From Penicillus capitatus (taxonomy: Eukaryota > Plantae > Chlorophyta), in the NCBI GenBank assembly GCA_965649825.1, contig OZ287695.1, forward strand, positions 911,081-975,080: a stretch of DNA of 64,000 bases, given 5' to 3'. Under the pieces are notes generated by a model. The model was given only the letters and a program-made list of their open reading frames with translations, was not told the origin of the DNA and searched no databases. The translations under genes were made by a program, and so were the position numbers. This document shows positions 837 to 37,879 of this stretch, one piece after another. Positions within the stretch are counted from its first letter, which is position 1. Every line of letters starts with the position of its first letter.

Positions 837-3800
837 TCACGGACTCAGGAGTTTCTTAAGAAAAGGCCCTTCTGAGTTAGAGCAAATAGGGTCAGCGTGA
901 AAACAGATAACGTCAAAAGGCGTTTTACCATCGTTGTTCGTTATCGTCTTCGATGCTCCGGCATCCACCAGGACCTGAAAATACACAATCAAACTACATG
1001 ATGATCTCTCTGACTCGCCTTTGCTGTCTCTGATTCGCCTTCATCTGCTGCATAGTGAAGTGGAGTATCTCCATATATATCTACTGCATTGAGAGAGACA
1101 TCTTCTGCGATCAACAACTGCAACAGGGAAAATGGAAAAGGGCGTTAAGTTAGGAGTATACTTTCACGACTTCAGGATTCCCTCTAGCCACGGCAAGGTG
1201 AAGTGGTGTCATTTCATAATCGGTTTCATCGTCGGCGTTTGCTCCGTGTTCGAGAAGAACCTGGCAATCGGCAGATTTTGTCAACATGGCAACGAAGTGA
1301 ATCTACAACCGACCTCCACCATTTTAGCGCCTGCGTAACGTGCTGCAATATGCAGAGCAGTCCATCCATCGTCGTCGGCCTGTTCGATGTCCGCTCCGTT
1401 CTCGAGGAGCATCTGACAGTCGATAGATTCCGCTAGTAATGCAACGAAGTGAACACGTTACCGACCTTGACCATTTCAGCGCCTGCGTGACGTGCTGCAA
1501 AGTGCAGAGCAGTCGATCCATCGTCCGTCGCTGCGTTAACGTCTGCTTCGTGTTCGAGGAGAACCTATACGACAGCTTCTGCAAGTGTAGAAGAAGTGAA
1601 TACGTTACCGACCTTGACCATTTCAGCGCCTGCGTAACGTGCTGCAATATGCAGAGCAGTCCATTCATCGTCGTTGGCCTGTTCGATGTCCGCTCCGTTC
1701 TCGAGGAGGACCTGACAGTCGATAGATTCCGCTAGTAATGCAACGAAGTGATTGCATAACTGACCTTGACCATTTCAGCACCTGCCAAACCTGCTGCAAC
1801 ATGCAGAGCAGTCGATCCATCGTCCATCGCTGCGTTAACGTCTGCTTCGTGTTCGAGGAGAACCTATACGACAGCTTCTGCAAGTGTAGACGAAGTGATT
1901 GCATAACGGACCTTGACCATTTCAGCACCTGCCAAACCTGCTGCAATATGCAGAGCAGTCGATCCATCGTCCATCGCTGCGTTAACGTCTGCTTCGTGTT
2001 CGAGGAGAACCTATACGACAGCTTCTGCAAGTGTAGACGAAGTGATTGCATAACGGACCTTGACCATTTCAGCACCTGCCAAACCTGCTGCAATATGCAG
2101 AGCAGTCCTTCCATCGTCGTTAGCTGCGTTAACGTCTGCTTCGTGCTCGAGGAGAACCTGGCAATCGACAGATTCTGCCGTTGGGGCAACTAAGTGAATC
2201 TACAACCGACCTCCACCATTTTGGCGTCTGCGTATCGAGCTGCCAGATGCAAAGGAGTCTCTGTGTTGCTGTTCAGCTTGTCGACGGTTGCGTTATGTTC
2301 CAGAAGAACCTACAAAGCATGAGCACAGGGATTTGATAAACAGAAGCAATGCGTCTAGGCTCTGTAATCCAGAGTGGACTCGGAAGAGCGTGCTACCTCG
2401 GTGCTTTCTGTCGCACTGTAATACGCCGCCCAGTGCAGCAAAGTCAATTGCTGCCGTTTAGAGTACCATGGCATTCGAACCATGGCCTTGTAGAAAGAAT
2501 CTGGATCCAGTTCCTCCAAAAGAGCAGCTTCCAGCTTTAGGGCATTGTCATCCTTTATACAGCGAAACGCCTCCTACGGAACTGTCTGTCATTCCCAACG
2601 ATCTTCATTGTCAATGCAACCTTAATCAGCTCCTTCTGCGAAAGTCTTCTCATCTCTTCGCGCCATTCTTCACGTTCCTGTTGTTCCGACTTCTCCTCTT
2701 TCACTTTGTCGTCTACATGTTCATTTAACTCTGAAGATCTTACGTCATCTTCATCATCTTGCGAAGCTCCGTTAGTAACTTCCAATGTGTCTTGCACCTG
2801 CACTGAGCAATCAGGACAGAAAAGCAGATTTGGAGAACAGTTTACATCGTCTTCGCCAATTTCTTTTAGAATCCAGTCCCAGAACGCGCCGATACTTGTG
2901 TAAATGGAAGGTGATCCATCAACGCAATTCTTAGATCCCATGGATGTCACGCCGACAATCATGTCGAGTTCCGGATTTCCGGCAGCTACGTCTCCTTTAG
3001 GTTTGTTAGAGATCAACAGCGGACCACCAGAGTCTCCTACAACAAGAGAATCTCGGCAGAAATAGGTAATCTCATATCACCGTCCTAAACCTTCACATGT
3101 GTTTTCAGGCGAGAATCCAGCGCAAATTGAGTGACTCTTGACTGAGTTGCCCATGAGTTTCTTGCAGATGTGGTGTTCCACATGTACTAGATCATTCGTC
3201 ATCTGTAAAGAATTCGGATACTTTCCAGTCTTGTTTAGTCCCCATCCGAGTACGGTAAACATCTTCCCGGTAGGAAAATCGCCTCCCTGAGTGTCTAGTG
3301 ACGGCAGCGTGAGATTTGCCTCTTTATTCAATTTGACAACGGCGATGTCATATCCATCTTTCACGTCGCCGCTCCAAGATTCGTGAATGTGACTCTCTTC
3401 CCCGCTGAATACCTAATAACTTCCTTCTCGGTAAAGTGAATGGCCTTGAACAGATCACTTTGTCGGAGTCGATTGCGTCGAGCTCGTAAATACCGCAGCG
3501 GACAAGCGGATGTCTACCGAGACTGTTCAAAGATGGATCAACGCAATGTGCTGCAGTGACCACCCATTGTGGTCGAATGAGAAATCCGCCGCAGCGGTGG
3601 ACCTCTTCTTCTCGTGTCGCAAGACTGCAAACGTAAGGGAACCGTCCCTCAGGCGCCTCTTCGCCCTTCGTCAAGAAAAAAAGTTAGGTGCCGTCAGAGA
3701 ATCGTGCGACTTCACGATAATGTATGGAACGTGTTTCTTCGTGGAGTCTGGGTTTCCCGACTTCTCTGAACAATCACCCGTGTCGGAGTGTTAACCGACA

Positions 3801-8700: not shown

Positions 8701-9268
8701 TATCCATCCTTAACATCTCCGGCCCAGGATTCATGCCAGTAACTTGCCTCGCCGCTGAACACCTAGCAAGTATTCATTTCTACGCAGAACGCGTAGAAAC
8801 GCGAATGTGTTACTCTGCTGTGGTCACTATCATTAAGCTTGTGAATACCGCAGCGGACGAGCGGATTTCTTCCCAGGCTGTTAGAAGATGAGGGGTCGAC
8901 GCAGTGCGCTGCTGTGACCACCCACTGCTGTCGAATGAGCGTTCCGCCGCAGTGATGAGAACCCGTTTCTCGAGTGGATAGACTGCAAATGTAGGGGAAC
9001 CGTCCTTCAGGTGCCTCGTTTCCCTGTAAGAAGAACGAACGTCAAAATCTGAGTTCGTGCATCACGGACGATCTCACGATGACATAGGGAATGAGAAACT
9101 GCCCGGACGCCGATTTTTCTGCGACCTCTAACATACACGCGCGCCGGAAATGTCACCCGGAGAGGCACTACCTTTCTTTTTTTGGCATGCTGCCACGCAG
9201 AAGTGCAAGAAAAGCAGCAGAGAAAAATGAAAGCCGCGACGGCAAAGTGAAACAGAGAAACGTTTCAT
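5778..9268 (-). CDS. Secreted S1 serine protease-ankyrin repeat fusion protein, paralogue 2 (~11 repeat exons)
   Basis: Signal peptide MKRFSVSLCRRGFHFSLLLFLHFCVAAC; VVTAAHC, GYDIALVKL, GDSGGP; 48-nt junction intron 7916-7963; 33-34 codon ankyrin exons; stop TGA at 5778-5780. Confidence 0.85.
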
Positions 9269-10056
9269 GTCAACGGCAAGAATGTGTTTGTGGTAGAACG
9301 TGCGCTTAAGTAACGCGAACGGTTCAGTCATTAAATGCTTTCCCTTACCCGTCGCTGCGTGCTGGCCATTGAGGAAAGACGGATGGAACCGTTCGTACGT
9401 CTCCTTCGTAGATTTGGATTCCTAGACACCGAGATGACGCATGGGAGAGATCTAATGCTTCCCGCAATGCGTATGCATACACACTTCTCAACTGTGCTTA
9501 TCACTTTAAATACTGTTTATACATACAAGCAGTGGTTGATGGTAGATATGACATCGAACTGAGAAGAACGCAATCACGGAAGGAACACCGTCTCATGCTA
9601 CAAAACAGAGCTAAGCAGTAGATTCCGCCTAGGTTTAGGGTAGTAACGTTTCTATTTTGTTCACGGCATCGAGAAAAGCAATACCGAGCGTTGGGCCTGC
9701 CAGCGAGTTCTCCCGCAGCGTCGATAGAAACGAAGGCCTCTTCTGCTGGGATGCACATTAAAGATATGTTTGTCATCTGAACACTGTGTATGTCCTTAGG
9801 TAACCTGCCTATTTCACTCTTTGCGGATTCGTCTGTTTGGAGAAACAACGGTTCGAAGCTCGGAGTGGCGGTAATGGTTGAGAACTCTTTCAGTGGCGCA
9901 TTTTGACATTTGCGGTTTGTTTGAGTAATCGTCGATGCTGCACGACGATCAAAGGGATACTGAGGACGGTTTTTCCTATTTTATCAACTTCCATTCGTAT
10001 AAGATACACCTTTATGCTTTCCGCTCGTGCTGCATCTGGATTTCGTGTGTGAAACG

Positions 10057-12298
10057 ATGACCGTTCCCAGAATAATAGCTTTTCTAGCATTGGCACTTTT
10101 GTTGTCGACACACAGTAGCTTCGGTCAAATCATCGACTCCATTCCAAAACTCAGACGCTTCATAAGGTCACAGGAAGCCATTGTGAAAGACATCGCCGAG
10201 AACGCAACGAAATGGCATGCGGACAGAATCCGTCTCGTCCGCGACTGCGAATGCTCCAGACACGCCTGTTCTAATGACTTCCTAAACGTCGAGTGCGTCC
10301 ACCACCTCGGGGAACTGGACATTTGTAAAACCGACGGACGACGGGTGGACTACAACAACTCCATCTTCCGCACGCCTCGGGGCACGAATCCGAAGAGGCT
10401 CACCGACAGCCTCAAGGAGAGCATCTGCGTCTACAAGCAGTTAGAAGATGTCGTCAAGGAATACGGTCGCGATGAGATTGGATGGATTTACATCGGTAAG
10501 AGTAATTCTCAGTCCTTCGACGTTATCCAGTTCTACAGGAACACGAGATGGACACTTTCGACGGTATCCAGGCACGGCGGATTCGCGTCATGACGAGAAT
10601 GGAGATGAGTTGTGGAATTTATGCAGACTGTACGATCCTCGCCTTCGTCCATGGTATATCGGAGCCAGTACTGGACCGAAGGACCTCGTTCTGGTGGTGG
10701 ACAAGTCCGGCTCCATGCTGGACTACATAGATTTTGCGCAAACGAAGACCAAGTGGGATTTGATTTCTCGAGCTGTGTCCGAAATGATCGACACGTTTAC
10801 CTTTGCCGACTTCATCTCTCTAGTGACGTTTTCGGACTCGGCTGGGACAGCTTTGCATGGAACGGGTCTTGTCAGAGCCACCGAAGAAAATCGTCAGAGA
10901 CTGAAAGAAGCACTTCGAAATGAGACTGCCGTGGGGCAAACCAATTTTACAGCAGCATTTGAAGCAGCCTTCCCTTTGCTATGGGAGGGCTGCGACACCG
11001 AGCCGCCGCAATGTTCGAACTGCGAGAAGATCATTCTTTTTCTGACGGACGGCAGAGACACATCTGGAGAGAATCGAGCAAGCATCAAGCCGTCCAAGAT
11101 GGCCGCCGTCATTGAACGCCTTCAAACAGAACTTGCCAACAAAACAGGCAAACGTGCAACCATCTTCACCTATTCGATGTCCGACGATGCCGACGATGGC
11201 ATCCCCAGACAGATCGCCTGTGCGAACAATGGAGCCTGGGCCTTCATCGGGTTCCACACAAAGACACTGGACGCCTTGAACTCATACTACCTGTATGAGG
11301 CGGCCAAGCGCCGTACAGAATCGCCGTTCTGGATCGAGCCCTACGAGGATGCGAGCGGACTGGGACTCGTCACCACAGTGGCCATGCCTTTCTATGCCCG
11401 CGGAACGAACGATGTGCCTGATGTGTTCCTGGGCGTCGTGGGACACGACATCATTCTGAGCGAACTGGATTTCGAAGAAGTGACCAGAGATCAAGTGATC
11501 AGTGCTATTATACCCCGTTCAAAGGACTGTCATCTCGCAGACAACACTCCCTGCGAGTTGCAGGTCTACAGGAATGCGCACGATAGGAGATCGCGCTGTG
11601 CTGATCCCCATCACGACATATCCAAGCACTCTCCGTCTGCTAAGTCAAAGGAGCCGTACGTCCTGTGTCACGTGCATAAAGGTATGTACTACAAGAGATC
11701 GGTGGAAGAGGCGACCTGGAGAGAGGCCGTTTCCAAGTGCGAGGACATCGGAGGAAGCCTTGTGAGTGTCAAAGATGAAGAGGAGTTGGCTTTTCTGGCA
11801 AATCTGGCATCGATTGACGGATCTTGGATTGGCGCAGAGAAAACGCCAATGGCAAGCTTTGGCTGGCTGGACGACTCTTTACCGACTCTGTCACGGGACT
11901 CCGAGTTTTGGGGTATCCAGGAACCTCTGGCTGTACATGGAACCGAAAACTGTGTCGCCATCGACACGAGAGGCGTCATCGCCAACCTGAAAGCCATGCC
12001 ATGCAACAACCTCGCGACATACATCTGCAAGTTTGACACTGACGATACGTGTCCTGCCGGCATCGCCAGCCCAGGAGTAAAGGGATACTTCAAGGTTCCC
12101 CCTCTGGACAAGTGCGTCGACGAAATCGAAGCTCTCGATGAGACGAAGCCTGTCGAAGACGTCGAGGATCTGTCGACGGATGATGTCATGTGCCCCTTGG
12201 GCAGAAACAGAACGAACGCGGAACTTCAATGCTGCGGCGCCGACGACGATCTCTGCAGGACTATCTCCAAGAGAAGGTCTTTCAAGAAGCAATGTTAG
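10057..12298 (+). CDS. alpha2delta-like (Cache + VWA) secreted/membrane protein with C-type lectin domain, paralogue 1; C-terminus uncertain
   Basis: Signal peptide MTVPRIIAFLALALLLSTHSSFG; YDPRLRPWY; VWA with MIDAS DKSGS...TNF...FLTDG; Cache motif PYEDASGLGLVTTVAMP; CTLD C..IGGSLVSV...WIG...ENCVAI...YIC; one intron near 10496-10538. Confidence 0.8.
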
Positions 12299-13931: not shown

Positions 13932-16847
13932 ATGATACGTTTCACACTTTCGCGTCGACATCTCGGTCACTCACTTCTCTTACTACTTCTATTGCACTGC
14001 TCCACATCTACATGTCACTCAACAAACGGTAACGCGCCTTTGCTGAGACGTTGAACACGGTTCGGTTGCGACAGAGGCAACAACGAAGTCCGAGGCGAAA
14101 CAAACAAAACCACTCTACCTAAATGTGAACGCAATGACTCGCAGACAACGCTTGGTTGAGTTCGGATGGCTGACAGGCGGAAGAAGCTCCGGCCAGTCGG
14201 TTTCCATACACCTGTAGTCTATCTTCCAGAACATTAGGGATTCACGGTTGCGGTGGCGTACTGATTCGACCGCAATGGGTCGCGACGGCGGCGCACTGCG
14301 TTGACCCTAGTCTAACGGAATCTCTTGGTCGAAACCCCGTCGTGCATTGTGGTATTCACAAACTCGACTCTGAGAAAGGCGAAGTGAGGCAACCCTGTCT
14401 GATGACATCCCCTTTTGTAAAACAAGCGACGGTTGGCAGTTGTTGAGTGCTGAGGCGACCTATCTGCACAAGTTTTGGACAGGGAATCATAAAGACGGTT
14501 ATGATTTTGCTCTGCTCAAGCTAAAGGACAAAACGAAAATCCCATTGCCGTCTGTCGACATTCAGGGAGGCCATTTCAAGAACGGCAGTACGTTTACTGC
14601 ACTCGGTTGGGGAAAGAAGGAGGATGGACTCTTGCCGAATGCACTGCAAGTGGCTGAAATGGTCTATGTCGATCCAGAGGCCTGTAAGGAAGTCTACATC
14701 AGTCAAGTCACGAATCACACCATCTGCGCCGGATTCGATCAGAATGCCTGTGAGGGTTCGTTCCTGCATTCTCTTCTGTATCGCGAGTAAGCGCTGCGGT
14801 TAGGTGATTCCGGTGGACCATTGATCGTTCCCAACGCTCCTGGCCGGAAAGTCTTTGCCGGAGACCCCACCATTGACCAGGTCATTGGTATCACTTCAGC
14901 AGGACCCGACGACTGCGCCGATGGATACCCAACACTCTATACCAGTATTGGATCGGTCTGGGACTGGGTGCTCGAGACGATTGGCGAATCTTCGTCGGTA
15001 AGAGAATGGCTACACACGTCTATGGTCTTAGACACCTCCGTGCTGTACTAGCCATCTTCGTGCCCCGTATCCTGTCCGGATCCGTCCGATCTCGAAGAGG
15101 TCTGCCGCAACTACTGTGATGGAGAGAAGGGAGATGAAGAAACGATCGAAACGGAGCGCAAACGTTTAAGGAACCTGACAGAGAAGGAACTGCTCTATGT
15201 CGTTTCCTCTTCGAAATACGAGAGGAGAGTTGATGATGTGACATGTGCAGGAAGCTTTCATGTCAACAGTGGATGACAATGCACTGACGTTGGAAGCTGC
15301 TCTCGAAAAGGGACTGCATCCCGATGCAAACTATGGCGATGGTTATTCTTCGGATTATCCATTGGTGGCACAATCGACGTTGCTTCACTGTTCTGCTGCC
15401 TACAATGCATCAACGTGTGCCAAGGTCACATACCTATCTGCCACTCTTGCATTGCTGACGGCGGATGTGTTGTCACTCCATTCTGTCTCGCCAATAGATT
15501 CTGGTAAACAGCGATGCTGACGTTAACAGTGTCAACGCAGCAAACTTGACGCCTCTGCATATTGCCGCCATGACTGGATCCGCGTCCGTTGCAAAGGTGA
15601 GACCAGAGTCCCGACCCGATCGGCATCTCTTCTCGTATTCTCGATGCACGATAACGACATAACGGATCTAGATCCTTCTGGATGCTGAGGCTGACACAGA
15701 TTTGGCAGATGACATGGGGGCCACGGCATTGCACATCGCAGCGAGGAAAGGGCATACCACCATCGCCAAGGTGCGAAATTCAATCGGTCGGCGCTGCCAG
15801 TCTCAACGTCCAATTCAGATGCTGATGTCGAAAGGCGCTGACCTCGAAGCACTGGACGATTCGGATCAAACACCACTGCACGAAGCGGTCAACAATGGCC
15901 ACGTCGGAATGGTCAAGGTCGATGCAGCATTTCTCCTTCTCCATCTAAAAGGGACGATCAGGTTCTCTTGGATTTCGGCGCAGAGACAGATGCTGCGGAG
16001 AAGGGTGGGAATACTCCCCTTCATATCGCGGCACACTATGGACATACATCCATCGTCAAGGTAATCCCTCGGAAGAGTCGTACACTTGGCGACATTCAAA
16101 GCCGAAATCTGTGAACAGCTTCTCCTTCGCGACGGAGCGGATGTCAATGCAATCGATGATGAGGCGTGGACTGCCCTGCACACGGCATCGCGTTTTGGAC
16201 ACGTTGAGATCGCGAAGGCACGGCATCGGATATTTCTCTCTAAATCAACGTGGACTGTTGGCAGATTCTGCTGGATCACGATGCAGATGTCGATGCCGTC
16301 AAGGCCAACTCATGGAATGCACTCCACTTGGCTTCGCGCTATGGACACGCCAAGATCGTGAAGGTTCTTCTCTGGATCCATCTCCGCACCTAGTAGCAGA
16401 GTGCATCGACAGGACCTCCTCCAACACGGAGCAGATGTGAATGCCGCAAAGAACGATGGATGGACGGCGATGCACTTGGCGATTCTTGGCAAACATATCG
16501 AAGTCGTGAAAGTACATCCAACGTTTCGTCAATGTCGATCGCATCTCTGCATTTGTCGCAGATTCTTATCGACGAAGGAGCAGATTTTGACGAGGTCACA
16601 GAATCTGGGCATACTCCTCTTCATACCGCAGCCGGTTTCGGACTGTTGAACATCGTTAAGGTGCATCTAGGTCGCCTCTTATCGTCTCCACACCGCATCA
16701 TCTATCCAGGTCCTGCTGGATGCCGGAGCTTCGAAGACGGTGACCGACGTCGATGGATTGACGCCTCTGGATGTCGTGTGCGCCGAACACCATATTATTT
16801 GCTCCGAAGAGACACGGACTTCCATCAGGAAACTTCTGTCTCCATAA
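13932..16847 (+). CDS. Secreted S1 serine protease-ankyrin repeat fusion protein, paralogue 3 (8 divergent repeat exons)
   Basis: Signal peptide MIRFTLSRRHLGHSLLLLLLLHC; WVATAAHC, GYDFALLKL, G|DSGGP; junction intron 15199-15250; eight 99-nt ankyrin exons; stop TAA at 16845-16847. Confidence 0.85.
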
Positions 16848-17729
16848 CTGTTTGCCTGCTCCGTTGATAGCATAGCACACAACCTCATGACAACTCAGTC
16901 GTATTCTTCTAATGGACGCCGTTGTGGCATCAATCATGCGTGTCCTGTATCTCTTGTAGAGATCGTAGATATGGAAATGGTGATTGAGGTACTGTTTGAA
17001 AGACTTAAGGGTAGGTGGTGGGATACATGTATTGGTTGGCGAGTTGCTTGACATTGGAATGTTGCCTAGCTGGAAGGTTAGAGATGCTTCGACAGTTTCA
17101 CATGTTGATAGGTCATTTGGCACAGCTCGAGAGGTCACTTCGCGGCAAAAGGCGCCATCGAGATGCAACGAGAAGTGAGATGAACGTGCTGGTTAAGCCA
17201 GCGATGGATTCGTCCGCACATCAAGAGAAGATGCGAATCGCGTATCGTTACAAAACGATCTCCGCGCCGAAAGACGTCGTCTACTTATTCTGTCCACGAG
17301 AGCGGCAGACAGTCTGACCAAAGTATAGAGCATGAGAGATCAGATGACAAAAGACAGAGCGACCGGGTTTAACATAACGAAAGAGTGTTGGTACATAGCG
17401 TACCGCCGATCCGCCCATGTCCACAACCACCACGCCGATCACAGAGCGCGTTTGCCCTAATCGTCGACTGCCGGTTGAATAGACGACCGTGTTGCGCGTT
17501 CGACTTGTCTTCGATAAATTCGCCGGCTTTCAAGAGTAGCGGGGCATCGTCCGTCTACATGGGGACACTGAAACACGAACGTGATGTGTGTCGCTGCTAT
17601 ACAGTCGGTTGGAAATCGGTTATGTTAACTGAGAGTGTGTCAACCAATTGCCCCTTGACTGTGTCGGTTGTCATCAGATGTTCTAGTTGAAAGAGCAACC
17701 ATACACGCACAAAATCCAATACTCGTGAA

Positions 17730-19902
17730 ATGAAGTTTGTTTGGAAAAACAATGCACTTCGAACGTTGCTGCTCCTGTTGTTCGTTCATGGGGTTCTGAC
17801 CGAAGAGCTCAACGAGTTCATTAAAGAGCAAGAAAAGGTTGTAAAGGGTCTGGCCAAGAACGCAACGAAATGGCATGCGGACAGAATCCGTCTCGTCCGC
17901 GACTGCGAATGCTCCAGACACGCCTGCTCCAACGACTTCCTGGACGTCGAGTGCGTGCATAACCTCGGAGAGCTGAAGATGTGCGAGGCCGATGGACGAC
18001 GGGTGGACTACGGCAATTCCATCTTCCGCACGCCCTTTGGTACAGACCCAGAGACGTTGACTGGCAACCTCAAGGAGAGCACCTGTGTCTATAAGCAGCT
18101 GGAAGATGTCGTCAAAGACTACAGTCGCGATGAGATTGGATGGATATACATCGGTAAGGGCAATTCTCACTCCTTCGATTTTGACATGGTCTGCAGGAAC
18201 ACGGGATGGTCACTTTCGCCGATACCCAGGCACGGCAGATTCGCGTTATGTGGATAATGGAGACGACCTGTGGAACTCATGCAGATTGTACGATCCCCGT
18301 ATTCGTCCATGGTACATCGGAGCCAGCACTGGACCGAAAGATATTGTTCTGGTGGTGGATAAGTCTTGGTCTATGCTGGACTACATTGGTTCCGAGAAAA
18401 AGACAAAATGGGATTTGGTATTGGATGCCGTGACAAAGATCCTTGATACCTTTACTTTTGCCGATTTTGTTAGCGTCGTTACGTTCTCTGACGAGGCTGA
18501 TACCGTTCTGAAGGGGCCAAGTCACGTCAGAGGACAGCGAGAGAGCCTGAATCTCTTGAAAGAAGCATTGAAGGAAGAAATTCCGGTCGGCAGAACGAAT
18601 TTCAGTGCTGCATTCGACGCAGCGTTTCCCGAACTGTGGGAAGGATGCGATGAGGAACCTACACAGTGTTCCAACTGCGAGAAGATCATTCTCTTCCTCA
18701 CCGATGGCCAAGATACGTCAGGCGATGACAGGGAGAGCATCAAGCCCTCTCAGATGGCGATCAAGATCGAAAAGCTTCAGCAGACGCTCATGGAGAAAAC
18801 AGGCAAACGTGCATCGATCTTTACCTACTCAATGTCCAATGAAGCCGACGATGGCATCCCTAGACAGATCGCCTGTGCGAACAACGGCGCATGGGCGTTC
18901 ATCGGACCAGATACAAACGTACTGGACTCCTTGAATTCATACTCTCTGTATGAGGCGGCCAAGCGCCGTACAGAAACGCCGTTCTGGATTGAGCCCTACG
19001 AAGATGCCAGTGGACTGGGGCTCGTCACCACAGTGGCGATTCCTTTCTACGCCCGCGGAACGAATGATGTGCCAGATGTGTTCCTGGGCGTCGTGGGTCT
19101 CGACATTATTCTGAGCGAACTGGACTTCGAAGGAATGACCCAGGAAGCTATCTTCAATGCGTTTTTTGATCGTTCCAGTCGCTGTGTCCTTGCCGATACG
19201 ACGCCCTGTGAGATCCAGGTCTACAGAAACTCCCATGATGAAAGATCTGTCTGTGCCGATCCTTATCCCAATGTCCTGGACGCGCCTCCCGTTGCCGAAT
19301 CCTATGAACCTTATGTTCAATGCTACGAGCACAATGATCATTACTATAAGAGATCGTCCGAAGAGTTGCCATGGGACGAGGCCTTATCAAAGTGTGAGGA
19401 CAGTGGAGGCGAATTGGTCAGCGTCAAGGACAAAGAGGAGCTTGCGTTTCTGGCAAATCTGGCCTCGCACGATGGATCATGGATTGGTGCTCGGAGAGAT
19501 CGGTCAGGAGACTTTGCCTGGCGTGATCGATTTCTGACAAAACTGAAGAGCAGCTCCGATTTCTGGGGATTGCTGGGAGCCAGTCGTGGAAATGATAAGG
19601 ATGCAGATTGCGTGGCCATCGATACGAGAGGCGTCATCGCCAACCTAAAATCCCGGCCATGCAAAAATCTCGCGACGTACATCTGCAAGTTTGACAGCGA
19701 TGATGCGTGTCCTGCCGGCGTTGCCAGTCTAGGAGTAAGGGGGTACTTCAAGGTTCCCCCTCTAAACGAATGTGTCGATGAAGTCGAAGCCCTCGATGAG
19801 ACGACGCCTGTCAAAGACGTCAAGGATCTGTCGACGGATGATGTTATGTGCCCCTTGGGCAGAAACAGAACGAACGAGGAGCTTCAGTGCTGCGATGTAT
19901 GA
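17730..19902 (+). CDS. alpha2delta-like (Cache + VWA) protein with C-type lectin domain, paralogue 2; C-terminus uncertain
   Basis: Signal peptide, YDPRIRPWY, DKSWS MIDAS, FLTDG, PYEDASGLG and CTLD; colinear with 10057-12298 including the intron position. Confidence 0.8.
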
Positions 19903-20625
19903 GATGATGTCTGTTAGAAGACCACCAAAAGTGCGTGTCTTTCATACTACCCTGGTCATTTCTGTAAACGAAGATGCTGTCGGAAACGTCGATAGAGATC
20001 AGGATCTGTGTGGTTTGTTCGCCGATGGCATCATCACTCTTTTTTTGTCGTCGCTGGTTGGAAGCGAATTTCAAGTATGGCAACTTTCCCCCATGACATT
20101 GCTAAGTTGATATTGGTTCATTGCCTCACGTTAGAACTCAATCTACTGATTGTTCGCATAATCTACTTTCTCGAGTGAGATTCTCATCTGTGGTGGGGGT
20201 ACATATGAGACATCTGTCCGTCTTCTTTCCTTTCTGACTTTTATATTCTTGTACTTTGCACAGTGCTGGCTAATATCCTATGTTGTAGAAACATACAACT
20301 CTTCTTAACAGATCCCATTGTCAAAGGGAATTCATGCAGATCACATCATGCATCCTCTGCCCAACATCCATTTCGCGTCATGAGAATGCGCCCGATCAGA
20401 CAGGATAAAACGAATATCTCGATCGGATCGAAGTTGTGTTGTGTGATCGATTCGCTTTCGGAGTCGAAAAGTCTGATCGATTTCGATTCTTTCGATCGCG
20501 TTTCGGCAGATCGATCGACGCTGAGCAATCATCGTTACCATACGCCTGCAAGGCCGTACAACAATGATGCAGGTGTACGATGACGCAATCGTCATTACTC
20601 GTCGCATCGCGCGAGCGTCTGCGGG

Positions 20626-21933
20626 ATGTCTTGCGTCTTGTACAAACGCGAAGAGGCATGGGGACTGCCGTCCTTGTCCTGCGCATGTATCCAAGCCGAG
20701 GTGCACGACAAACGTCTCGATCGGCATCGCGCATCTGTCTGCTCTGTCTTGCTCTTCTCCTAGGCACTGCTGCGTTTTTCTGGAGCAGATTTTCGCGTCG
20801 TCGTTCAGCAGGAACCCGGTCGTTCTCCGACAGGTCAAGCCTCTGAGCACACTAGGCGGCTCGTCGACGTGGGGTGTCTCCAGGTTTTCATCCGGCCTTT
20901 GAGAAGGACCAGAAATTGGCATCGACGGAAGATTGCGTCACCGAATTCGATTGCGTTCGCCAGATCCATGCCTTTCTGAAATCCACGAGTGCTGATGTCG
21001 ATGCGCATCTCGCGCAGAAGGCGGCTGCAATGTCCAAAGCCATGACGACCTTCATCGAGCAGGATCTCGAACCGGCCACTCTTTTTACGACGTGGTGTGA
21101 GAAGGAAGGATTCAAACACTATAAAGTACATGAACCATCTCACTCTCGTTCTCACTCTTTCTACTATCGGTTCAGGATGCATTTGGTGGGAAACTGCTCT
21201 TCCCCCTGAACTTTATTGTGGCAAAGACAGAGCAGCGCAGCATGAGTGGCCGGGTTTCTAAATCGCAGCCCGACGATGTCAGGTCCGCTGTGTTAGCGTC
21301 CTTCTCTGATGTGACGTTTGGCAGATTTATCGCAAAGCGTGTGATCTACTGGATGCCGTTTCGCATCTATTGGACGGGCAGAACTCGTACCTCTTTGGTG
21401 ATATCCCCTGCAGCACGGATGCCTATCTCTACGGTCATCTTCTCTTCTACCGCCTGTCTCCCGTCACATCACCTGTCCTTCAACGCAAGGTCCTTCCTGA
21501 TGACGGCGTGATGGACGCCACTCGATTGGGTGTTTCTCTCTGCAGCTGAATGCACTGGAGAATGTCAAGAGCTACGTACAGAGGATTACGGCAAACTATT
21601 TTGCCCAAGGCGTTCCAGCTCTAGAGTCTGTTGATGTGACAGCTCCTGCAGAAGAAGAGGAAATGTCATCGGCATGGTCCACCTCCCCAGCGGTGGTCTC
21701 CACTCCCTCCACTCTCGCCAACGTGATGTATGTGAGCGTGTCTGTAGAGTGCGACCCTGTGGAGTGCACAGAAGCTGTGGAATGAGCTGCAGAAGATGGA
21801 TAAAATGAGCAGGTGGTGGCTAGGCAGCGCAACAACTCTCTTGCTTCTTTACTCCTGGTTTCGTCCCCCCTTCGTCGTCATCGTAGAAAATGGCGACGCT
21901 TTTGCTGACGATGGGGACGAAGATGCAGACTGA
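20626..21933 (+). CDS. MTX1: Metaxin-like mitochondrial outer membrane protein
   Basis: N-terminus MSCVLYKREEAWGLPSLSCACIQAE; GST-C-like DLLDAVSHLLDGQNSYLFGDIPCSTDAYLYGHLLF; C-terminal TM followed by acidic tail DDGDEDAD*. Confidence 0.7.
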
Positions 21934-27345: not shown

Positions 27346-29132
27346 ATGCGCAGGCGCTACTCTCCAGCTGCCCTTCGGGACCGCCACCCTCTCACGTTAG
27401 CATTGTGCCTTTCATTGTGCGTTTCAGCAGGTATCCCGTCGTGCGTTTCGTACCGTTATCTGACCGGGTTGGCGGTTTTCGTAGTTGTCCTCTTTGTCTT
27501 CTACCTCGCCGAGCCACAATCGGTTCGCGATGCATTGCGTCGTATGGTTGGAAAAGATACATCGGACAAGTCAGAAGGCATCACAATTCCGACACGCGAA
27601 AGACCTATCAAGGCGACCACAGTGTCCGAAGTGGGCGAAAGAATCGGCGAAGTGACACCACAGTCCGGATGGTTCTCCGAGGACAACCAACCATTTCATT
27701 CGGCCATTCTTATTGCTGGTTCATCCGGCTATGCAAACTACAGACATCAAGCAGACGCGTGTCATGCATTTCAATTACTAAAGCATCTGGGCATACCATT
27801 GGACCAGATTATTACGTTTATATTTGACGACATCGCACACCATCGAGACAACCCATACCCTGGTCAGATCTTTAACCGTCCAGGTAAGGGCGGCGCGATC
27901 GTCATCGATACAGATCGCAAGACGGCGACGTGTTGTTAGGTGGGCAGAATGTCTATCCTGGATGTGCGAAGGACTATAGAGGATGGGATGTGAACAAGGC
28001 GACGGTGTTTGCTGTGCTAAGGGGCGATGCCAGAGCTGTGAGAGGTGTCGGAAGTGGTCGAGTGATTAAAAAAGACCCGCGGCAACGGATCTTCTTTTTC
28101 TATTCAGATCACGGTTCAGCGGGAACCATTTCCATGCCAGTGGGACCGCCGATCTTTGCAGACGAGCTGCAGCATGTTCTCAAGATAATGGCCGATAAGA
28201 ATACCTTTCGTGAGATGGTGATCTATCTGGAGGCCTGTAACGCTGGATCCATGTTTCGAGGATTTCATATGGACAAAGTCTACGCTGCGACGGCGGCTGA
28301 TGCTTATGAGAGCTCGTTTGCAACGTACTGTCCCGATTATGGCCACAAGACACGACACATAGAGCCAAACGCCACTTACGTTGGCGCATGTCTGGGCGAT
28401 CTTTTCAGTGTCTCCTGGATGGAAGATACAGAAGACCACGACGTCTCAATGGAGAAAGTCGAGTCTCAAGTCGGTCGCGTGACCGAAAGAACGAGCAACG
28501 CCCGCACGTATTACTATGGCAGTCACGTCAAGACCTACGGCGACAAGAGAGAGAACATCCGACAGCAGGTTCTGGGCAACTACCTGTCCTATTTCGCTGC
28601 GCCTTCTGGATGGACACGGTCTGACTCAGAAAGGCTGTTCTCCAAGATGAAGAGACCAACCACAAATCATCGAGATCATTCGAAGAGGGAGATCCACTAT
28701 GATCAGCGAAGCGCTGATTTACTATTTTATTATCAGAAGGCTCTGCAGATGGCCAACGATGGTGATGCTGTCCAACAATTGGAGGCAGAAGTGACGAGAC
28801 GATATCAAGTGGACACACTCGTCCGCCGTGTCATCCAAGATCAGTTTGATCAGAACCGTCTACCAATGGACGCCTCTGTTGAAGCCTATGCCACCCAAGA
28901 AGTCTTTTTTCGGGAGAATCGTCCCGTCGTCGACGATTGGGATTGTCTAAGGGGTATGTTGCAGGTTTTTGAAGAGAATTGCGTCAAACTCGACGACTAC
29001 TCGCGTCAATACACATGTACCTTTGCCAATTTCTGCAATGCTGGTCTCAGTCCTGTGGATATCGTGCCGGGTCTATTGGCGCATTGTCCGTTTATCCATA
29101 CCTCGACGAACACTGTCCCTGTTATGCGTTAA
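27346..29132 (+). CDS. Legumain / vacuolar processing enzyme (peptidase C13), paralogue 1, with N-terminal hydrophobic anchor
   Basis: [22 protein letters not shown], catalytic SDHG and [17 protein letters not shown]-terminal VVDDWDCL; start uncertain. Confidence 0.9.
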
Positions 29133-30234: not shown

Positions 30235-30364
30235 ATGGAAGATAGTAACAGTGGCGGCGGATGGAAGATAGTAACAGTGGCGGCGGATGGAAGATAGTAA
30301 CAGTGGCGGCGGATGGAAGATAGTAACAGTGGCGGCGGATGGAAGATAGTGACAGTGGCGGCGG
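30235..30364. repeat. Minisatellite, 5 x 26 bp (atggaagatagtaacagtggcggcgg)
   Basis: Direct reading; four perfect copies and one copy with a single substitution. Confidence 0.95.
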
Positions 30365-31999: not shown

Positions 32000-33736
32000 A
32001 TGCACTCGTTCAGTCTGCCTCGTTTGTTGCTCCTTGTCGGACTTTGTTCGCTGTCCGCCACCACCTTTGCGCGTAAGCATCCACTCGTACCCTTTGCGTT
32101 CGTTTGTCGACCGATACATCACAGGTCCTGTGCGCGACTTTTGGCCCTTCCCGTGGTTTTTCCCGCCGCCGGAACCCACTGTCAAGCCGCACACCATTCC
32201 CAAACTCCGTATCAAAGAACTTCCGGCGCCATCTGCACCGTCGACGGTGAATTGGTTTTCCGCTTTTAACAAGAAATACCACTCAGCGGTGCTCATCGCC
32301 GGTTCGAACGGATACCGCAATTACCGCCATCAAGCAGATGTCTGCCACGCCTACCGCATTCTCCGCGAACGTGGGCTCAAGGATGATAACATCATCACCT
32401 TTGTTTACGACGACATTGCTTACAACAGCCTCAACCCATATGAAGGGCAACTCTTCAACAGCCCAGGTATGTGTGTGTGTTCGCACTCTGTCTGTGATGT
32501 TGACCTGATGTGACAGGTGGAAAGGATGTGTATCCCGGCTGCGCTAAGGACTACACAGGCAGAGATGTGAACAAGGATAACGTCTTGGCAGTGCTGACTG
32601 GACGAGCCGACATCGTCAAAGGTGTTGGAAGCGGCCGCGTTCTGTTTCCCAATCCCAAGCAGCGCGTCTTTATGTTCTACAGCGACCACGGCTCCGTTGG
32701 CAGTATCGGAATGCCGACTGGACGTCCATTGACTGCCAAGGAATTGAACAATGCATTTGCTTACATGCTCAATATGGATTTCTTTCACGAATTGGTATTC
32801 TACCTGGAGTCGTGTGAGTCGGGGAGCATGTTCCACGGCTTCAACTATGATCAGCAGTCAAAGGTGTTGGCCGTATCTGCATCGTTGCCGGATGAGAGCT
32901 CGTACGCCACGTACTGCAGAGCGGATAAAAGCCACCCGATCTCGCCCAATGCCAGCTACATTGGCGCGTGTATGGGTGACCTGTTCAGTGTATCGTGGAT
33001 GGAATACGCAGAAGCGCACGATGCCGCAGAGGAGACGATCGATAAGCAACTGAGATACACGAACGATCGCACCAGCGATTTCAAGAAGTATGCCATGGGC
33101 AGTCATATGATGATCTACTGTCGCAAAACGATGCCCATACTGCAAGAAGTCATTGGCAATTTCTTGTCCTACTTCACTGTGCCCAGCGGACTATCTAAGA
33201 AGGATGCCTATTCAGCATCGCCGTCCTTGGAAGAAAACTCTTCGCGTGATACCTCTGTCCGCGACATCTCTGAGAGTAACGGAGATGAATACATGACGAT
33301 GGCGCAGAGAGATGCCGATCTGATGTTCTTGGTGAAGCGCTCGATGAGCAACGACTTCAAAGTTCGAGAAACTGCGACGAAAGAACTTCAGGAGACCTTG
33401 CAACAACGAGAGGAAGCAGACCGATCCATCCGATCCATCGTCCAGATGCTCATGGACAACGGTTTGCTGGAAAACAAGAAGAACGATGCAGATGTCGAGG
33501 CATATGTCACCAAGTTGTTTCTCAGAGGGGAAGACAAACAAGTCGTTGACGACTGGGATTGTTTTGAAAGCTTTTTGGATGTGTGGTATCAAATGTGTGG
33601 AGAGATGGATGATTACTCCAGACAATACACCAGAGCCTTTGCCAATCTATGCAATGCTGGCATCGGCGTTGCGGATTTTGCGCAGGCCACAATGAATGCT
33701 TGCGCAACGAACAGAATCACGTACTCGGCGACATAA
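32000..33736 (+). CDS. Legumain / vacuolar processing enzyme (peptidase C13), paralogue 2, with cleavable signal peptide
   Basis: [24 protein letters not shown], intron, then [18 protein letters not shown]; SDHG; ESCESGSMF; [12 protein letters not shown]; VVDDWDCF. Confidence 0.9.
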
Positions 33737-33894: not shown

Positions 33895-36783
33895 TTAAGA
33901 TGACGTGCGTGAGCGTTTCGATCGCCGCGATTGTTGTTTGGCTACTTGCTTCTCCTGCTGGAGTCTCTTCAGATTCTTGGCATGGCGGCCTATCCCTCGC
34001 ATACGTTTGTCCGATTTGAGGCGTTTGTCTTTCAGTGGCATCCGACGCATCGCTCCGAGTCGCTTGCGGCGTCCCATCTTCTGGAGCTGGTCTTTGGTGA
34101 CGAAGGTACTGTTGTTCTCTTTCTTCCGAGCCTTGTTCATCACTTTGGCCATCTGACGCATCTGAGCACGATGTGACAGCTCCTCCTGATTGGCGATGCC
34201 TTCGGCGCGTTTCATGGCTGTACGTAAGCGATTGGCCAGGCGCTTCGCTTTACGCGACTTGGCCTCTGCGACTTTTTTGATCGGGCGACTGTCCATCGCA
34301 CGCAGCATCTCTTTCTCGGCCTCGATCTCGGCACGTGTGACCATCCGCTGGGGCCTAGATGACAGCCGCCGCCATCACAAACGTCACATCACGCGTTGCA
34401 TCGAGCGACCTGTTGTAGATATCGTTGTCCTGCTCGAACCATTTCGGAAGGTGGCGATCGTGGAAGACATACCGACTGTAGGCGGCATCAATGATATTCT
34501 CTTTCTCTTTCCTTCGAAGCATCTTACGTGCCATAGCCAAAATCTCAGCCTTGCCATCCACATCCAGCATACGGAACTCATCCTCCGTATCCGTCCCTGA
34601 CAACGCAGAAATGCACGTCTGCTTATGACAGCGACCCGAAAGCGTCACCTCGATCCTCCTCTTTCATCTGCGATGCAGCCTCTCTCCCCACGACTTCGAA
34701 ATCGGAGACATCTGCATCGGTTTTGACGTCTGCCGCTGCCTGTTCTTTGAGCTCCTTATAGTCAGATGCCTCACTCATGACCTCCTCAGCCATCGCTGCG
34801 TCAGCTATCCTGTGACGGGTCGCGGGGATGGAAGCAGCATTCGGCATCTCTTCTTCCATCAAATCGGCATCCTGGAAGAGCTTCTGGCTGAACCATTGAG
34901 CGGAGATGGCATCTGGTGTCGTTGCAATACCAGCTCTGTCTGAATCTAGCTTAACCAACAGGCCGCCTCCCGGTGTCATAGCTGTCGCATCTTCATAACC
35001 GTCGTCATCCTTGGGCACTTGTGTCCATTCCATCTCTCTGTTGTCCTCCTCCGACAGCTCCCCTTTCTCATCCAATCTCTTCCGTCTCTGTATTTCACCT
35101 TCTTCCAGATTCGCACTCGCCACTTCGCGTTTGAGAAAGCGCTGATAGGAGTTTTCCAAATAGTCCTCCAGCAGCAGCTCATGCTTCAGTTCATCGTCAT
35201 CCTCTTCCGTTTCGCTATCGGATGCCGGACCTTCGCTTCCTCCCGAGTCCGCCTCCAGATCTGCAGACCATCGTCGCTGCTGCTCGATCTCTGTCTCTTT
35301 CTGAAACATGTCGAGGCTAAAGAGATCTGGGTCTGCCACCGCGTCTTCCCCTAATCCTTCCGTCTGCTTAAACTGCGCCAATCGTTTCTTGGCGTGTTTC
35401 TTCATCTCGCGCTGTTTCTTTGCTCTCTTCTTGGCTTTGTGCTCAATGCGTTCCTGAATCGCCGCCATCTCTCGCATCATCCTCTCTTCTGGATCGACGA
35501 CAGCCGCCACTGTCTCTTGTGCTGCTTTGGAAGGCTTCTGTGCCTCGATGTCTTTGAGAATGCACAACCGCCTGGAACGCAAAACAGTAACCACCTCTGA
35601 TGTTTGCCAGAGTAGGGCACCATTTGAGGAGTTTCTTGAATTCTTTCTTTCCCAGCACGAGCAGATCTTGACACGATTCGCGTATCTCATCGGTCGTCTT
35701 TGGATGATGCATCACTGTCTGGTATGCCATCTCCGTTGCTTTCTGCTTCTCTTCTTCCATTTCGGTAGCCGAAGTGTCGACGGGTTCAAACGTAAACTTC
35801 GTGTACAGTCCCAGCGTCTCGACTGGATCGGCAGATTGGATGAAGGTCACGATCGACGTCGACTTAAAAGTCGTCGAGGCTCCCTCTTCATATCCCTCAC
35901 GGAATTTTCGGTGCATCTTCTTGGACTGTTTCTTCTGCATGACGACGGGTCCATGTATTCTGGACGTAGATGTGTATTCCTGCAGCACATGACGTGCATC
36001 CAGGAGTCTCGGATCGATCTGCGCCGGAGCCTTGTAGTTCTGACAGACCAAGAAGATCTCGGCCGAAGCGTGGCGCGAGGCACTGGGCTTTGTGGCTTCC
36101 ACTTTGCCAAACAGCTGGTTGCAGACATAGAGCAACGCATTGTAATCCTTCGATCGGAAGACCTACATCACACATGACATCTCTCGTGGCGGATCACACT
36201 TTTCTCACACTTTTGTGATGAACCATCCCTTTGGCGCAAGGAACGCTGTGGCAAGTTTCATGGCATCGAGGACGAGAATGGCCTGAGAGATAGATTCGCT
36301 GTGCCATGCGCCTCCAACGTTCGGCGATCCATCGTTCAGGACGACGTCAAACAGATGCCCCTGCGATTCCTTGTCGATCAGCTTTTTGCATTTCTCTGTG
36401 GTGATATCGGCCACGAGACTCGTCGCCCCATGGATCGGTCGAATCGGCACCAGATCCACGCCCACAATCAAATGGTGCACCGGCATGTGTTTAGCCGCCA
36501 CTTGCATCCAACCCCCTGAAAACCATCTCCATCCACTGCCACCACTACCCATGACTGGCGGGATTACCCGGAGCGGCGCAGAGATCCAAAACGGAACGAC
36601 ATTCGGCAAAGAAGTTGTATTTCTTGTTGAGCTGGATCAACTTGAACGCGGCTCGAGACCGAAACCTGAAATCGCAGAGAATCGATCTGGGCTCTGCGTT
36701 GAGTGACCGGCATCCGACCCCTGTTCTTTTGCAAGGTGATAGAATCTGTCGAGGCGGCTCTTGCCCTTCGATGATTTCACCAT
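33895..36783 (-). CDS. SPB1: Pre-rRNA 2'-O-ribose methyltransferase SPB1/FTSJ3
   Basis: [60 protein letters not shown]; C-terminal [13 protein letters not shown]. Confidence 0.95.
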
Positions 36784-36848
36784 CCCGCCGAACGAACGCA
36801 CCAACGCGGCGGCAGCTGACAGTACGACGCGTCACGCCACTGCTGAAG

Positions 36849-37879
36849 ATGGCACTGCGTCGTCTCACCAGACTTCGGTCTGCCTTGAAGCCGATGGTGG
36901 GGCGGGAGATGCCGTGGACGTGTGAGAGATCTTCTGTCCCACGTCTCCTCCAGGGCGTCCTGCAGCAGGAAGCTCATCTCTGGATTCGCAGTTTCGCTTC
37001 CACGACGTCCTTTCCCACGAATCTTCCCCTGTTCTCCTCCACGCTGTACGCGCACTCGGTCATGCATCCCGTGGGGTACAGATGTCACACAAGATGTGTG
37101 GAGATCTACTGTTTTGCAGTGGCTTCTCATTTCTCGGCCCTTCTCGACAGAATTCTCATCCGGAGGAGACAAGAAAAACGCCCAGCAATCCGCCGGGAAG
37201 AAATCTCTGATGATCGAAGAAGAGGAGTACGAGAGCATCACCGATAAAATCCCGGAGAAGCCGATGACGGCAGCGGAAGGCATCTCCTATACCTTCATCA
37301 TTCTGGCTGCCTTCGCTGTCCATCTCACGCACTCCAATCGACGGACGCGCTCGATGGCGTAAAGTATAGGTGTTGGCGATGTGTCTCTGGGCGTTTATCG
37401 TCAACTATGTTTGGGATCCCATCGAGTACACCTGTTTCAACATCACGCTCGAAAAACTGCGTTCCGATCCACGGGTCACCGTCCGAGTTGGAGACGTCAT
37501 CAAAGGTCATCTCTCACTCTTCTCACACTTTTTCGTAGATGGCGGCTATCGCAGGATACGGAACGGATTCGATGAATCGTCGGCAGCGGCACGTGATCCG
37601 GAATCGAAAATATCGAGACGCCAACGGCACGGATCACACTCAAGTGCGTCCTCTTACTCGGTGTCTTCGGTAGAGACGTGGCACTCGTATGCGCAGATTC
37701 AGTTCAACATTCGAGGATCGGGTGGCGTCGGGATCGTTTACGCCGATATGTTTCAGGATGCGTCCAAACAATGGCAATACACGTATCTTTATGTGGATAT
37801 CCCAGAAAAGGGCAAGAATGCCTCGCAGCGATTGGCCATCGTCACACCTCCCCTCCACAACGTCCCATCAAGTCTCTAG
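36849..37879 (+). CDS. TIM21: Mitochondrial import inner membrane translocase subunit Tim21
   Basis: Arg-rich presequence, [13 protein letters not shown], then [39 protein letters not shown]. Confidence 0.8.

Follow-up and report, generated by a model that had tools for sequence, protein, structure and literature searches.

In Ectocarpus-type genes each repeat of a solenoid domain occupies an exon of its own, 72 nucleotides (nt) long for leucine-rich repeats (LRRs) and 126 nt for tetratricopeptide repeats (TPRs), and the genes form clusters that evolve by birth and death (2012, PMC3341825). Brown-algal LRR exons are in phase 2 and, in ROCO genes, are alternatively spliced (Teng et al. 2024, PMC11378527). 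Repeat domains are also reworked in Podospora, where concerted evolution of the WD repeats of het-e, het-d and hnwd and their shuffling by unequal crossover or gene conversion have been described (discussed in PMC5100051; see also PMC2873952 and PMC12222747). Here we describe an array of nine ankyrin-repeat exons at positions 1019-2309 of a 64,000-nt stretch of the green alga Penicillus capitatus (contig OZ287695.1, positions 911,081 to 975,080; hereafter the window). The array belongs to an intact gene, P1, which encodes a trypsin-like protease joined to an ankyrin domain and sits in a cluster of at least five paralogues. Its repeat units are mosaic, the same design recurs throughout the gene family, and we put at roughly 80% the probability that germline gene conversion or unequal crossover shaped the array.

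P1 and its paralogues share with the ROCO genes and the NB-ARC-TPR genes of Ectocarpus the use of one fixed-length exon per solenoid repeat, a symmetric exon phase, a clustered arrangement with birth and death of genes, and a concentration of variability on exposed residues. They differ in the repeat itself (ankyrin, on 99-nt exons in phase 0), in the partner domain, where a trypsin-like protease carrying a signal peptide stands in place of the ROC-COR GTPase or the NB-ARC domain, in the homogenisation of mini-introns of 44-61 nt together with the exons, and in lineage, the best matches of proteins encoded in the window being to green algae. A first-pass annotation of this DNA had likened the array to the Ectocarpus ROCO genes, and the analogy is apt for the one-repeat-per-exon design but does not extend to dispersed, inverted, opposite-strand or inactivated spare exons, which were not found in the window: all 40 repeats returned by an nhmmer profile built from the exons lie on the coding strands of five arrays. 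With the Podospora genes, the P1 family has in common highly similar internal repeats that are homogenised and reshuffled within clustered paralogues and between them, variation at interaction positions and a repeat number that is probably unstable. The Podospora repeats, however, lie in one intron-free exon, selection and non-self recognition have been shown there by experiment, and in the P1 family exon 1 and the 3' tails are the only places where exchange between paralogues was seen.

In the vertebrate genes ANK1, ANK2 and ANK3, most of the 24 repeats of the membrane-binding domain lie on single 99-bp exons, and P1 has the same relation of one 33-residue repeat to one symmetric 99-nt exon. 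The vertebrate repeats are ancient and positionally conserved, are separated by long introns, show no recent homogenisation and form part of a cytoskeletal adaptor. Expansion of internal repeats between conserved capping repeats is a general model for solenoid proteins, with which P1 agrees in that its terminal exons are orthologous between paralogues and its internal exons specific to the array; it is unusual against that model only in that what is duplicated coincides exactly with an exon and its mini-intron. Our literature search retrieved no paper on trypsin-ankyrin fusions in algae.

Nine one-repeat exons and their introns

Regular-expression and translation scans, the gene model and the exon/intron listing place nine exons on the minus strand between 2309 and 1019, each exactly 99 nt long, in phase 0, preceded by AG and free of stops, and each encoding a single ankyrin repeat of 33 residues with the register VLLEHxADVNA...TALHxAA...EMVK. 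This is the layout given in the first-pass annotation, which was correct in coordinates, count and phase. We number the exons E1 to E9 in the order of transcription, each followed by the intron of the same number; I0 (2396-2310, 87 nt) precedes E1. The spacers I1 to I9 measure 53, 48, 48, 53, 48, 53, 53, 44 and 44 nt, and since those of 48 nt end with an in-frame TAG and those of 53 nt shift the frame, they must be introns. A coding role for the spacers was rejected on these stops and frameshifts and on the lengths of introns across the family, which have no bias towards multiples of 3. Donors are GT throughout the array except for a GC after E9, and Tandem Repeats Finder reports a period of 147 nt (6.5 copies) with higher-order periods of 299 and 446 nt.

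Exon halves go together with the adjoining intron sequence. The introns upstream of the HEADVNAA exons E3, E4 and E6 end in ...gcagaagctgtcgtatag (5' type a1) and those upstream of the NGADIEQA exons E5 and E7 in ...gcggaatctatcgactgtcag (a2), while 3' halves ending in GLAGAEMVK are followed by gtccgttatgc or gtcagttatgc (b1) and those ending in RYAGAEMVK or RHAGAEMVK by gtcggtaacgt (b2). The two 5' types with their own intron ends, and the 3' halves with their own intron starts, are all as the first-pass annotation quoted them. A third intron end, ...gattgccag, precedes both E2 and E8. At the amino-acid level no 3' half is common to both 5' types, and the mosaic is visible only in the nucleotides and the introns.

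Taken in order along the minus strand, E1 (2309-2211) is a hybrid, of first-exon type to about nt 66-72 and of internal type thereafter, and is followed by I1 (2210-2158), which is of the same type as I7, with a b3 start and the ...gattgccag end. E2 (2157-2059; HEADVNAAN...GLAGAEMVK) has a 3' segment identical to that of E3, and I2 (2058-2011) is identical to I3 (1911-1864). E3 (2010-1912) and E4 (1863-1765) are both a1+b1 and differ from each other at one position (99% identity). I4 (1764-1712) is itself a hybrid, with a b1-type start and an a2-type end that switch at tcacttc; E5 (1711-1613) is a2+b2 (NGADIEQA...RYAGAEMVK), and I5 (1612-1565) is again a hybrid, with a b2-type start and an a1-type end. 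E6 (1564-1466) is mosaic, a1 and like E3/E4 to nt 50 and b2 and like E5 from nt 73, and is followed by I6 (1465-1413), with a b2 start and an a2 end. E7 (1412-1314) is a2+b2 to nt 87 and then has an E1-type tail (AAAATGGTGGAG) that runs on into I7 (1313-1261). E8 (1260-1162) is the positional homologue of exon 55152-55250 of the paralogue P4, its nearest neighbour at 81%, and is separated by I8 (1161-1118) from E9 (1117-1019; LLIAEDV...ESETAK), the positional homologue of P4 exon 55295-55393 and of an exon at 9128-9226 of the related contig L008. The last intron, I9 (1018-975), is of the GC-AG class (gcgagtcagag...ttttcag). All four combinations of intron halves are found, b1|a1 in I2 and I3, b1|a2 in I4, b2|a1 in I5 and b2|a2 in I6.

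Mosaic composition of the repeat units

For comparison, each unit was cut into two segments, of which A covers exon nt 1-50 together with the 3' portion of the intron before it, and B covers exon nt 63-99 together with the opening 20 nt of the intron after it. E6 differs from E3/E4 at 2 of 78 positions in A and at 13 of 57 in B (Fisher p=4e-4), with the reverse pattern against E5 (29/80 in A, 4/57 in B; p=8e-5), and E2 differs from E3 at 16 of 80 positions in A and at none of the 57 in B (p=1.8e-4). Along E6, 27 E3-type sites are followed by nine E5-type sites with zero exceptions, the switch lying between exon nt 50 and 73 (P=2e-8, or about 1e-6 after correction for about 60 possible triplets). 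E7 tracks E5 through nt 87; thereafter, over its final 12 bases and 20 bases into the intron, it tracks E1. A permutation test of the pairwise homoplasy index (PHI) type over the 35 parsimony-informative sites of E2-E7 gave p=5e-5. Synonymous divergence (dS) between E3 and E5 is 1.08 in the 5' half vs 0.12 in the 3' half, about tenfold apart, and between E3 and E6 it is 0 in the 5' half and 0.39 in the 3' half. Homogenisation thus reaches silent and non-coding sites: I2 equals I3, intron halves travel with exon halves, and dS is 0 in shared halves.

The exon halves of the P1 internal units have different histories. Because the half types are accompanied by their own intron sequence, by a 5-nt difference in intron length and by their own silent sites, selective convergence cannot explain the pattern. 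Recombination detection on the units was positive, and congruent histories for the two halves were not seen; the in-register recombination proposed in the first-pass annotation is therefore upheld by the incongruent halves, the segregation and PHI probabilities, the four intron-half combinations and the contrast in dS.

E1 tells a related story across paralogues. Its match with the first exon of P4 (54376-54474) begins in the upstream intron and holds to about nt 66-72, with 88% identity in nt 1-51, and the second exon of P4 is matched with 92% identity in nt 61-99, which confirms at the nucleotide level an earlier description of this exon as a chimera of exons 1 and 2 of that paralogue. From nt 88 into the intron it equals P1's own E7 at all but one base, its tail and intron start being of E7 type, whereas the first array exon in all other family members ends ...G(K/R)GHxKV(A/V)K and continues with gta[ag]at.tacaa. 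The E1 hybrid looks as if a first exon and an internal exon had undergone an unequal exchange.

The longest invariant run across E2-E7 is GACTGCTCTGCA (12 nt, exon nt 51-62), and the intronic TCACTTC is a 7-nt invariant run of the same units. The switch points had been assigned to the codons for TALH and to the intronic cacttc, and the switch intervals do coincide with these invariant runs, as expected for homology-dependent exchange; the argument is, however, partly circular, because a switch can be mapped only to a stretch in which the parents are identical, and the switch in E7 lies at nt 87/88. A recombination hotspot at TALH and cacttc was considered and dropped, the data being too few and the reasoning subject to the same circularity.

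The protease-ankyrin gene P1

P1 is a minus-strand gene of 14 or more exons that extends from about 3911 to 837 and encodes a signal-peptide-like N-terminus, an intact trypsin domain and an ankyrin domain. In the gene model, joining the array to its flanking exons gives an open frame of 716 codons (3665 to 837) with, in order, three trypsin exons, a charged linker, a degenerate capping-repeat exon, the nine 99-nt exons and a final capping exon. Against Pfam, the product matches Ank_2 (PF12796) at E=1.4e-111 (365.8 bits, cut-off 27.3), Ank (PF00023) in 9 stretches with 247.5 bits, and Trypsin (PF00089, the S1 chymotrypsin fold) at E=1.5e-40 over profile positions 4-220 of 220. The catalytic triad is legible in the translation, from the gene model and the Pfam alignment together: the first trypsin exon (3665-3459, GEEAPEGRFPY...TAAHC) carries the His, the second (3412-3091, DGYDIAVVKL) the Asp and the third (3036-2621, GDSGGP) the Ser, followed by an acidic/charged linker.

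The gene model is corroborated by P0001, an mRNA-like, uninterrupted open reading frame (ORF) of 757 amino acids on a 2.6-kb JGI contig, which has the same layout of signal-peptide-like start, trypsin domain, linker, ankyrin repeats and C-terminus. P0001 aligns end to end with the conceptual P1 protein at 38% identity, and since the sole gap in the ankyrin region is one whole 33-residue repeat, the predicted splice junctions are undisturbed; the junction formed by the GC-AG intron 1018-975 also agrees with P0001. Upstream of the array, the linker exon (2573-2397) encodes a degenerate N-terminal capping ankyrin repeat (LTLLHWAAYYSATESTE) that aligns to P0001 and is helical in the structure model described below. 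Downstream, the last exon (974-837) encodes a C-terminal capping half repeat ending ...LLSP before the stop TGA (839-837), and this C-terminus is conserved in P0001. At the 5' end of the gene (3911-3666), an ATG at 3911-3909 opens a hydrophobic, signal-peptide-like start (MLLFSLPRKSIAALLLLASVLHIC...), with which P0001 starts alike. Enumeration found many splice combinations of this stretch that leave the frame open, and the N-terminal junction of the protease, at which an activation site of the zymogen yielding a new Ile/Val N-terminus would be expected, reads ...YII|GEEAPEG in one splice model and ...SPK|GEEAPEG in another, so that 5' splicing is ambiguous.

A single-sequence AlphaFold2 model of the linker and ankyrin part is of moderate confidence (mean predicted local distance difference test, pLDDT, 74.6; predicted template-modelling score, pTM, 0.68) and has helix pairs with a 33-residue period that run across every exon junction of the nine-exon array. 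As modelled, every junction is predicted to sit in the second helix of a repeat.

The trypsin-ankyrin architecture appears rare. Among the matches listed from a collection of 5.8 billion proteins, only P0001 had the full-length architecture of P1, the rest being mostly generic ankyrin proteins, and of two JGI metagenome scans for relatives of P1 one gave none and the other only P0001 and generic ankyrin loci. The best named match of the trypsin domain, at 39%, is P0243 (GMH36881.1) of Bryopsis sp. KO-2023, a tandem double trypsin without ankyrin repeats, and the ankyrin fusion is hence not common to that Bryopsis.

A family of trypsin-ankyrin genes

The five arrays of the window are P1 itself (1019-2309, minus strand, 9 repeats), P2 (5963-7612, minus strand, 11 ankyrin exons of 90-102 nt), P3 (15498-16660, plus strand, 8 exons of 99 nt), P4 (the paralogue 4 of the first-pass annotation; 54376-55393, plus strand, 7 exons of 99 nt, with four internal units 91-94% alike) and P5 (63274-64000, minus strand, cut by the window end, with at least 5 exons, four of them of 102 nt and nearly identical). 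P2 and P3 are old and diverged, without recent homogenisation. The four internal units of P4 display three mutually incompatible site partitions and the units of P5 differ in half-unit patches; both arrays are thus patchy too, and mosaicism is not unique to P1.

An exact look-up of one ORF of the window gave no match in public assemblies. Related contigs were drawn from two ENA long-read metagenome assemblies (ERZ26696514 and ERZ25074695). One of them, L002, shows synteny with the window, at a nucleotide identity of 80-85%, and does not extend to the position of P1; four others, L005-L008, hold eight further arrays of the same architecture, most of them adjoining a trypsin domain. The family thereby comes to 95 exons in 13 genes from three genomes, 76 of them of 99 nt and 15 of 102 nt, all multiples of 3 and in phase 0. 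Its 81 introns range from 43 to 96 nt (median 51), and their lengths fall evenly into the three classes modulo 3 (27/27/27), which fits non-coding sequence.

Terminal and internal exons of P1 have different relatives. The nearest neighbours of the terminal exons E1, E8 and E9 are exons 1, 6 and 7 of P4, at 81-87% identity, and each internal exon most resembles others of its own array, at 92-99% in P1 and 91-94% in P4. Positional terminal exons combined with array-specific internal ones are the classic signature of internal-repeat expansion with concerted evolution. The b2 type (RYA.A.MVK followed by gtcggtaacg) also occurs in L008 and is thus older than the species split, and the a1 intron end (...gcagaagctgtcgtatag) was found only in P1 across the family comparison.

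No clear one-to-one orthologue of P1 was found among the related genes fetched from L005-L008, which relate to it as many-to-many paralogues at 66-79% identity. This compares with 80-85% for neighbouring syntenic genes, a difference in keeping with clustered paralogues under birth and death. The closest related genes have 4-6 internal units. In the gene closest to P1, on L008, the place homologous to E8 (8987-9083) gives a profile match and no clean open 99-nt exon, and the apparent intron at that position is 198 nt long; it may be a decayed repeat exon.

Mechanism and alternative explanations

On the well-supported reading that we favour, germline gene conversion or unequal crossover, the unit of change is an exon plus its mini-intron, 147-152 nt in all, and the six internal units E2-E7 would have been amplified and repeatedly homogenised in the germline by homologous recombination between misaligned or neighbouring units, whether as short-patch gene conversion or as unequal crossover. 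Recombination acts on DNA, and intron sequence would therefore be carried along, with junctions that fall in exons, at the stretch coding for TALH and (in E7) at nt 87/88, as well as in introns, at tcacttc, and that leave hybrid exons (E1, E2, E6 and E7) as well as hybrid introns (I4 and I5). Since the duplication unit comprises exon and mini-intron and junctions occur in both, the process is clearly one at the level of DNA and in register. The simplest history of E6 would be the transfer of a patch of about 80-110 nt, from the intronic tcacttc to TALH, out of an E3/E4-type unit into an E5-type unit, and this one conversion would account for the junctions in both I5 and E6. The B segment of E2, the common tails of E1 and E7, and the E1 hybrid would need further events.

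Such exchange also has consequences for the protein sequence. Recombination at TALH re-pairs loop residue 17 with helix residues 25/26, giving the combinations S+GL, R+GL, W+RY and S+RH, and repeat number can change without a break in the frame. Over the 76 exons of 99 nt in the family, the most variable residues are 25, 22, 15, 26, 14, 17, 28 and 12. Positions 12, 14, 15, 17, 25 and 26 are those which we take to be the canonical ankyrin contact positions, randomised in designed ankyrin repeat proteins (DARPins), and all six are among the 8 most variable of 33 family-wide (Mann-Whitney p=2.5e-4), which fits a putative binding module. We infer that the ankyrin stack may be a target-binding module that directs the protease, and that changes in it could alter specificity or be under selection.

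Several points weigh against this reading, some of them on its recombinational and some on its functional side. Gene conversion and unequal crossover are indistinguishable from one haplotype, and splicing, copy number and the exact order of units are taken from a single assembly. It is unusual for a protein with a signal peptide to bear ankyrin repeats, and splicing at the 5' end of the gene is, as noted, ambiguous. Of the six contact positions, only 17, 25 and 26 differ among the P1 internal units, and well-sampled pairwise ratios of non-synonymous to synonymous divergence (dN/dS) in P1 are 0.3-0.9, and 0.3-0.6 in older comparisons, the few estimates at or above 1 resting on about four to seven substitutions. 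An adaptive reading of the first-pass suggestion that binding residues are shuffled is accordingly not borne out, as half of the contact positions are invariant in these units and well-sampled dN/dS stays below 1.

Four other explanations were weighed. One is that the array is built for programmed diversity, with symmetric exons serving regulated skipping or even somatic recombination so as to draw many specificities from one gene. Any skip would keep the frame, since all exons are multiples of 3 in phase 0; the intron motifs CACTTCGTTGC and TCTGTCGACTGYCAG are common to paralogues and species, and the one-repeat exons of Ectocarpus ROCO genes are alternatively spliced (PMC11378527). We nevertheless regard this as improbable: no transcript of the alga that would attest to skipping was found, the only mRNA-like relative, P0001, has a regular full array, and the window holds no spare, inverted or inactivated exons. 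The intron motifs are explicable by homogenisation together with splicing constraints on introns of approximately 50 nt, and the 33-residue repeat alone dictates a constant exon size.

P1 could also be a young, redundant or decaying duplicate, its mosaic units being neutral by-products without functional effect. The birth and death of genes in the family, the many-to-many relations that leave P1 with no clear one-to-one orthologue, the lack of an excess of non-synonymous change and the one position without a clean exon in the L008 gene (L008_g1) would all suit that view. It is to our minds just as doubtful an account of a gene whose frame is intact over 14 exons, whose splice sites are all present along with the catalytic triad, whose dN/dS is 0.3-0.6 in older comparisons and for which an ankyrin fold is predicted with moderate confidence.

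An assembly artefact, in which the array, the unit order or the hybrids would stem from collapse or mis-joining of near-identical 147-nt repeats, is less probable still. The identity between E3 and E4, introns included, is 99-100%, and short-read assemblies are prone to errors in repeats of this kind; the mosaic units, however, carry private substitutions (E6 nt 63, 64 and 76; intron nt 12) that a chimeric consensus would not make, the whole array is only about 1.3 kb long, frame and splice sites are kept in every hybrid, and the independent long-read metagenome relatives L007 and L008 have like arrays with homogenised units of their own. Least likely of all is that no recombination took place and that the halves diverged at unequal rates or were driven to converge by selection for certain amino acids, because, even if an exon-centred frame with three of the four combinations per half-type pair leaves a tree with clustered substitutions formally possible, synonymous sites and flanking introns, including the 5-nt length difference, co-segregate with the half types, the intron-centred frame holds all four combinations, the PHI and segregation tests are significant, and one and the same pair has a tenfold difference in dS between its halves.

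Splice sites and intron motifs

GC donors follow 16 of the 95 family exons, mostly as GCGAGT, and occupy fixed positions in the arrays, one behind the second exon type (...TAQ), the other behind the final exon of 99 nt (...TAK). They were located at 975-1018 in P1, from 55394 onward in P4, from 63273 downward in P5 and from 7365 and 5962 downward in P2, as well as in L005-L008. A 20-nt tandem duplication lies across the border of exon and GC donor at 55373-55410 in P4 (GGCGAGTCAGAGACAGCAAA, 1.9 copies) and at about 1000-1040 in P1, so that the last seven exon codons resemble the intron start; the upstream donor copy would shift the frame if used.

The 57-nt introns of P4 are in frame and free of stops, and an ORF of 208 codons spans three of them (54614-55240); no other introns of P1 or P4 are open. 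A retained intron would add 19 residues between repeats, and the in-frame introns are probably a coincidence of copied units. Two motifs recur in the mini-introns, CACTTCGTTGC at intron nt 15-25, kept in introns of P1, P4, L007 and L008, and TCTGTCGACTGYCAG at the 3' end, which holds the palindrome GTCGAC and is kept between paralogues and species; examples of these conserved sites are 1289-1300, 1441-1452, 1740-1751 and 54636-54647. They may be splicing signals of the mini-introns or merely homogenised sequence.

Neighbouring genes

Two paralogous genes that combine vWA and C-type lectin domains (10027-12298 and 18085-19902, plus strand) lie interspersed among the trypsin-ankyrin genes, a pairing that recurs in L007 (16330-17853). 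Further along the window lie two tandem legumain (peptidase C13) genes (27346-29132 and 32510-33736, plus strand), between which a perfect 26-nt tandem repeat stands in 5 copies (ATGGAAGATAGTAACAGTGGCGGCGG, 30235-30364). The pair adjoins an SPB1/FtsJ3 rRNA methyltransferase gene (34623-36900, minus strand), an arrangement syntenic with L002 at 80-85% nucleotide identity. The best named matches of SPB1, at about 54%, are from the chlorophytes Enallax, Chlorella, Chlamydomonas, Apatococcus and Tetraselmis. An ORF of 588 codons (47874-49640, plus strand), rich in Ser, Gly, Phe and Thr and resembling an FG-repeat nucleoporin, lies in the GC-richest part of the window. At 58987-60198 there is a reverse-transcriptase-like ORF fragment, close to an Rfam tRNA match (59946-60016, minus strand, 40.7 bits) that ARAGORN did not call, and the region may be a retroelement or a tRNA-derived element.

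On the related contig L005, an uninterrupted ORF of over 1576 amino acids (16336-20669) combines NB-ARC and TPR domains about 4-5 kb from a trypsin-ankyrin gene, and the minus-strand gene beside it has TPR pieces. One could see in the trypsin-ankyrin cluster, its vWA/C-type lectin and legumain neighbours and, in a relative, the nearby NB-ARC-TPR gene a fast-diversifying recognition or defence repertoire of a probably green-algal lineage, in which regulated skipping or frequent mitotic recombination would exploit the design of one repeat per exon with mini-introns to draw many protease-targeting specificities from one locus; we consider such a scenario improbable.

Implications

Concerted evolution of repeats by unequal crossover is already well established, and P1 is a clean but ordinary example of it. 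What the locus adds is an extension of a known principle, and not a new one, to another repeat type, partner domain and lineage. Within that frame, the array is an unusually legible case, at base resolution, of repeat domains rebuilt by recombination, and its analysis brings to light an uncharacterised gene family in which a signal peptide, a trypsin domain and a stack of ankyrin repeats are combined. Should the repeats guide the protease towards its targets, these genes would constitute a natural system of swappable recognition modules, a parallel to the brown-algal arrays of LRR and TPR exons.

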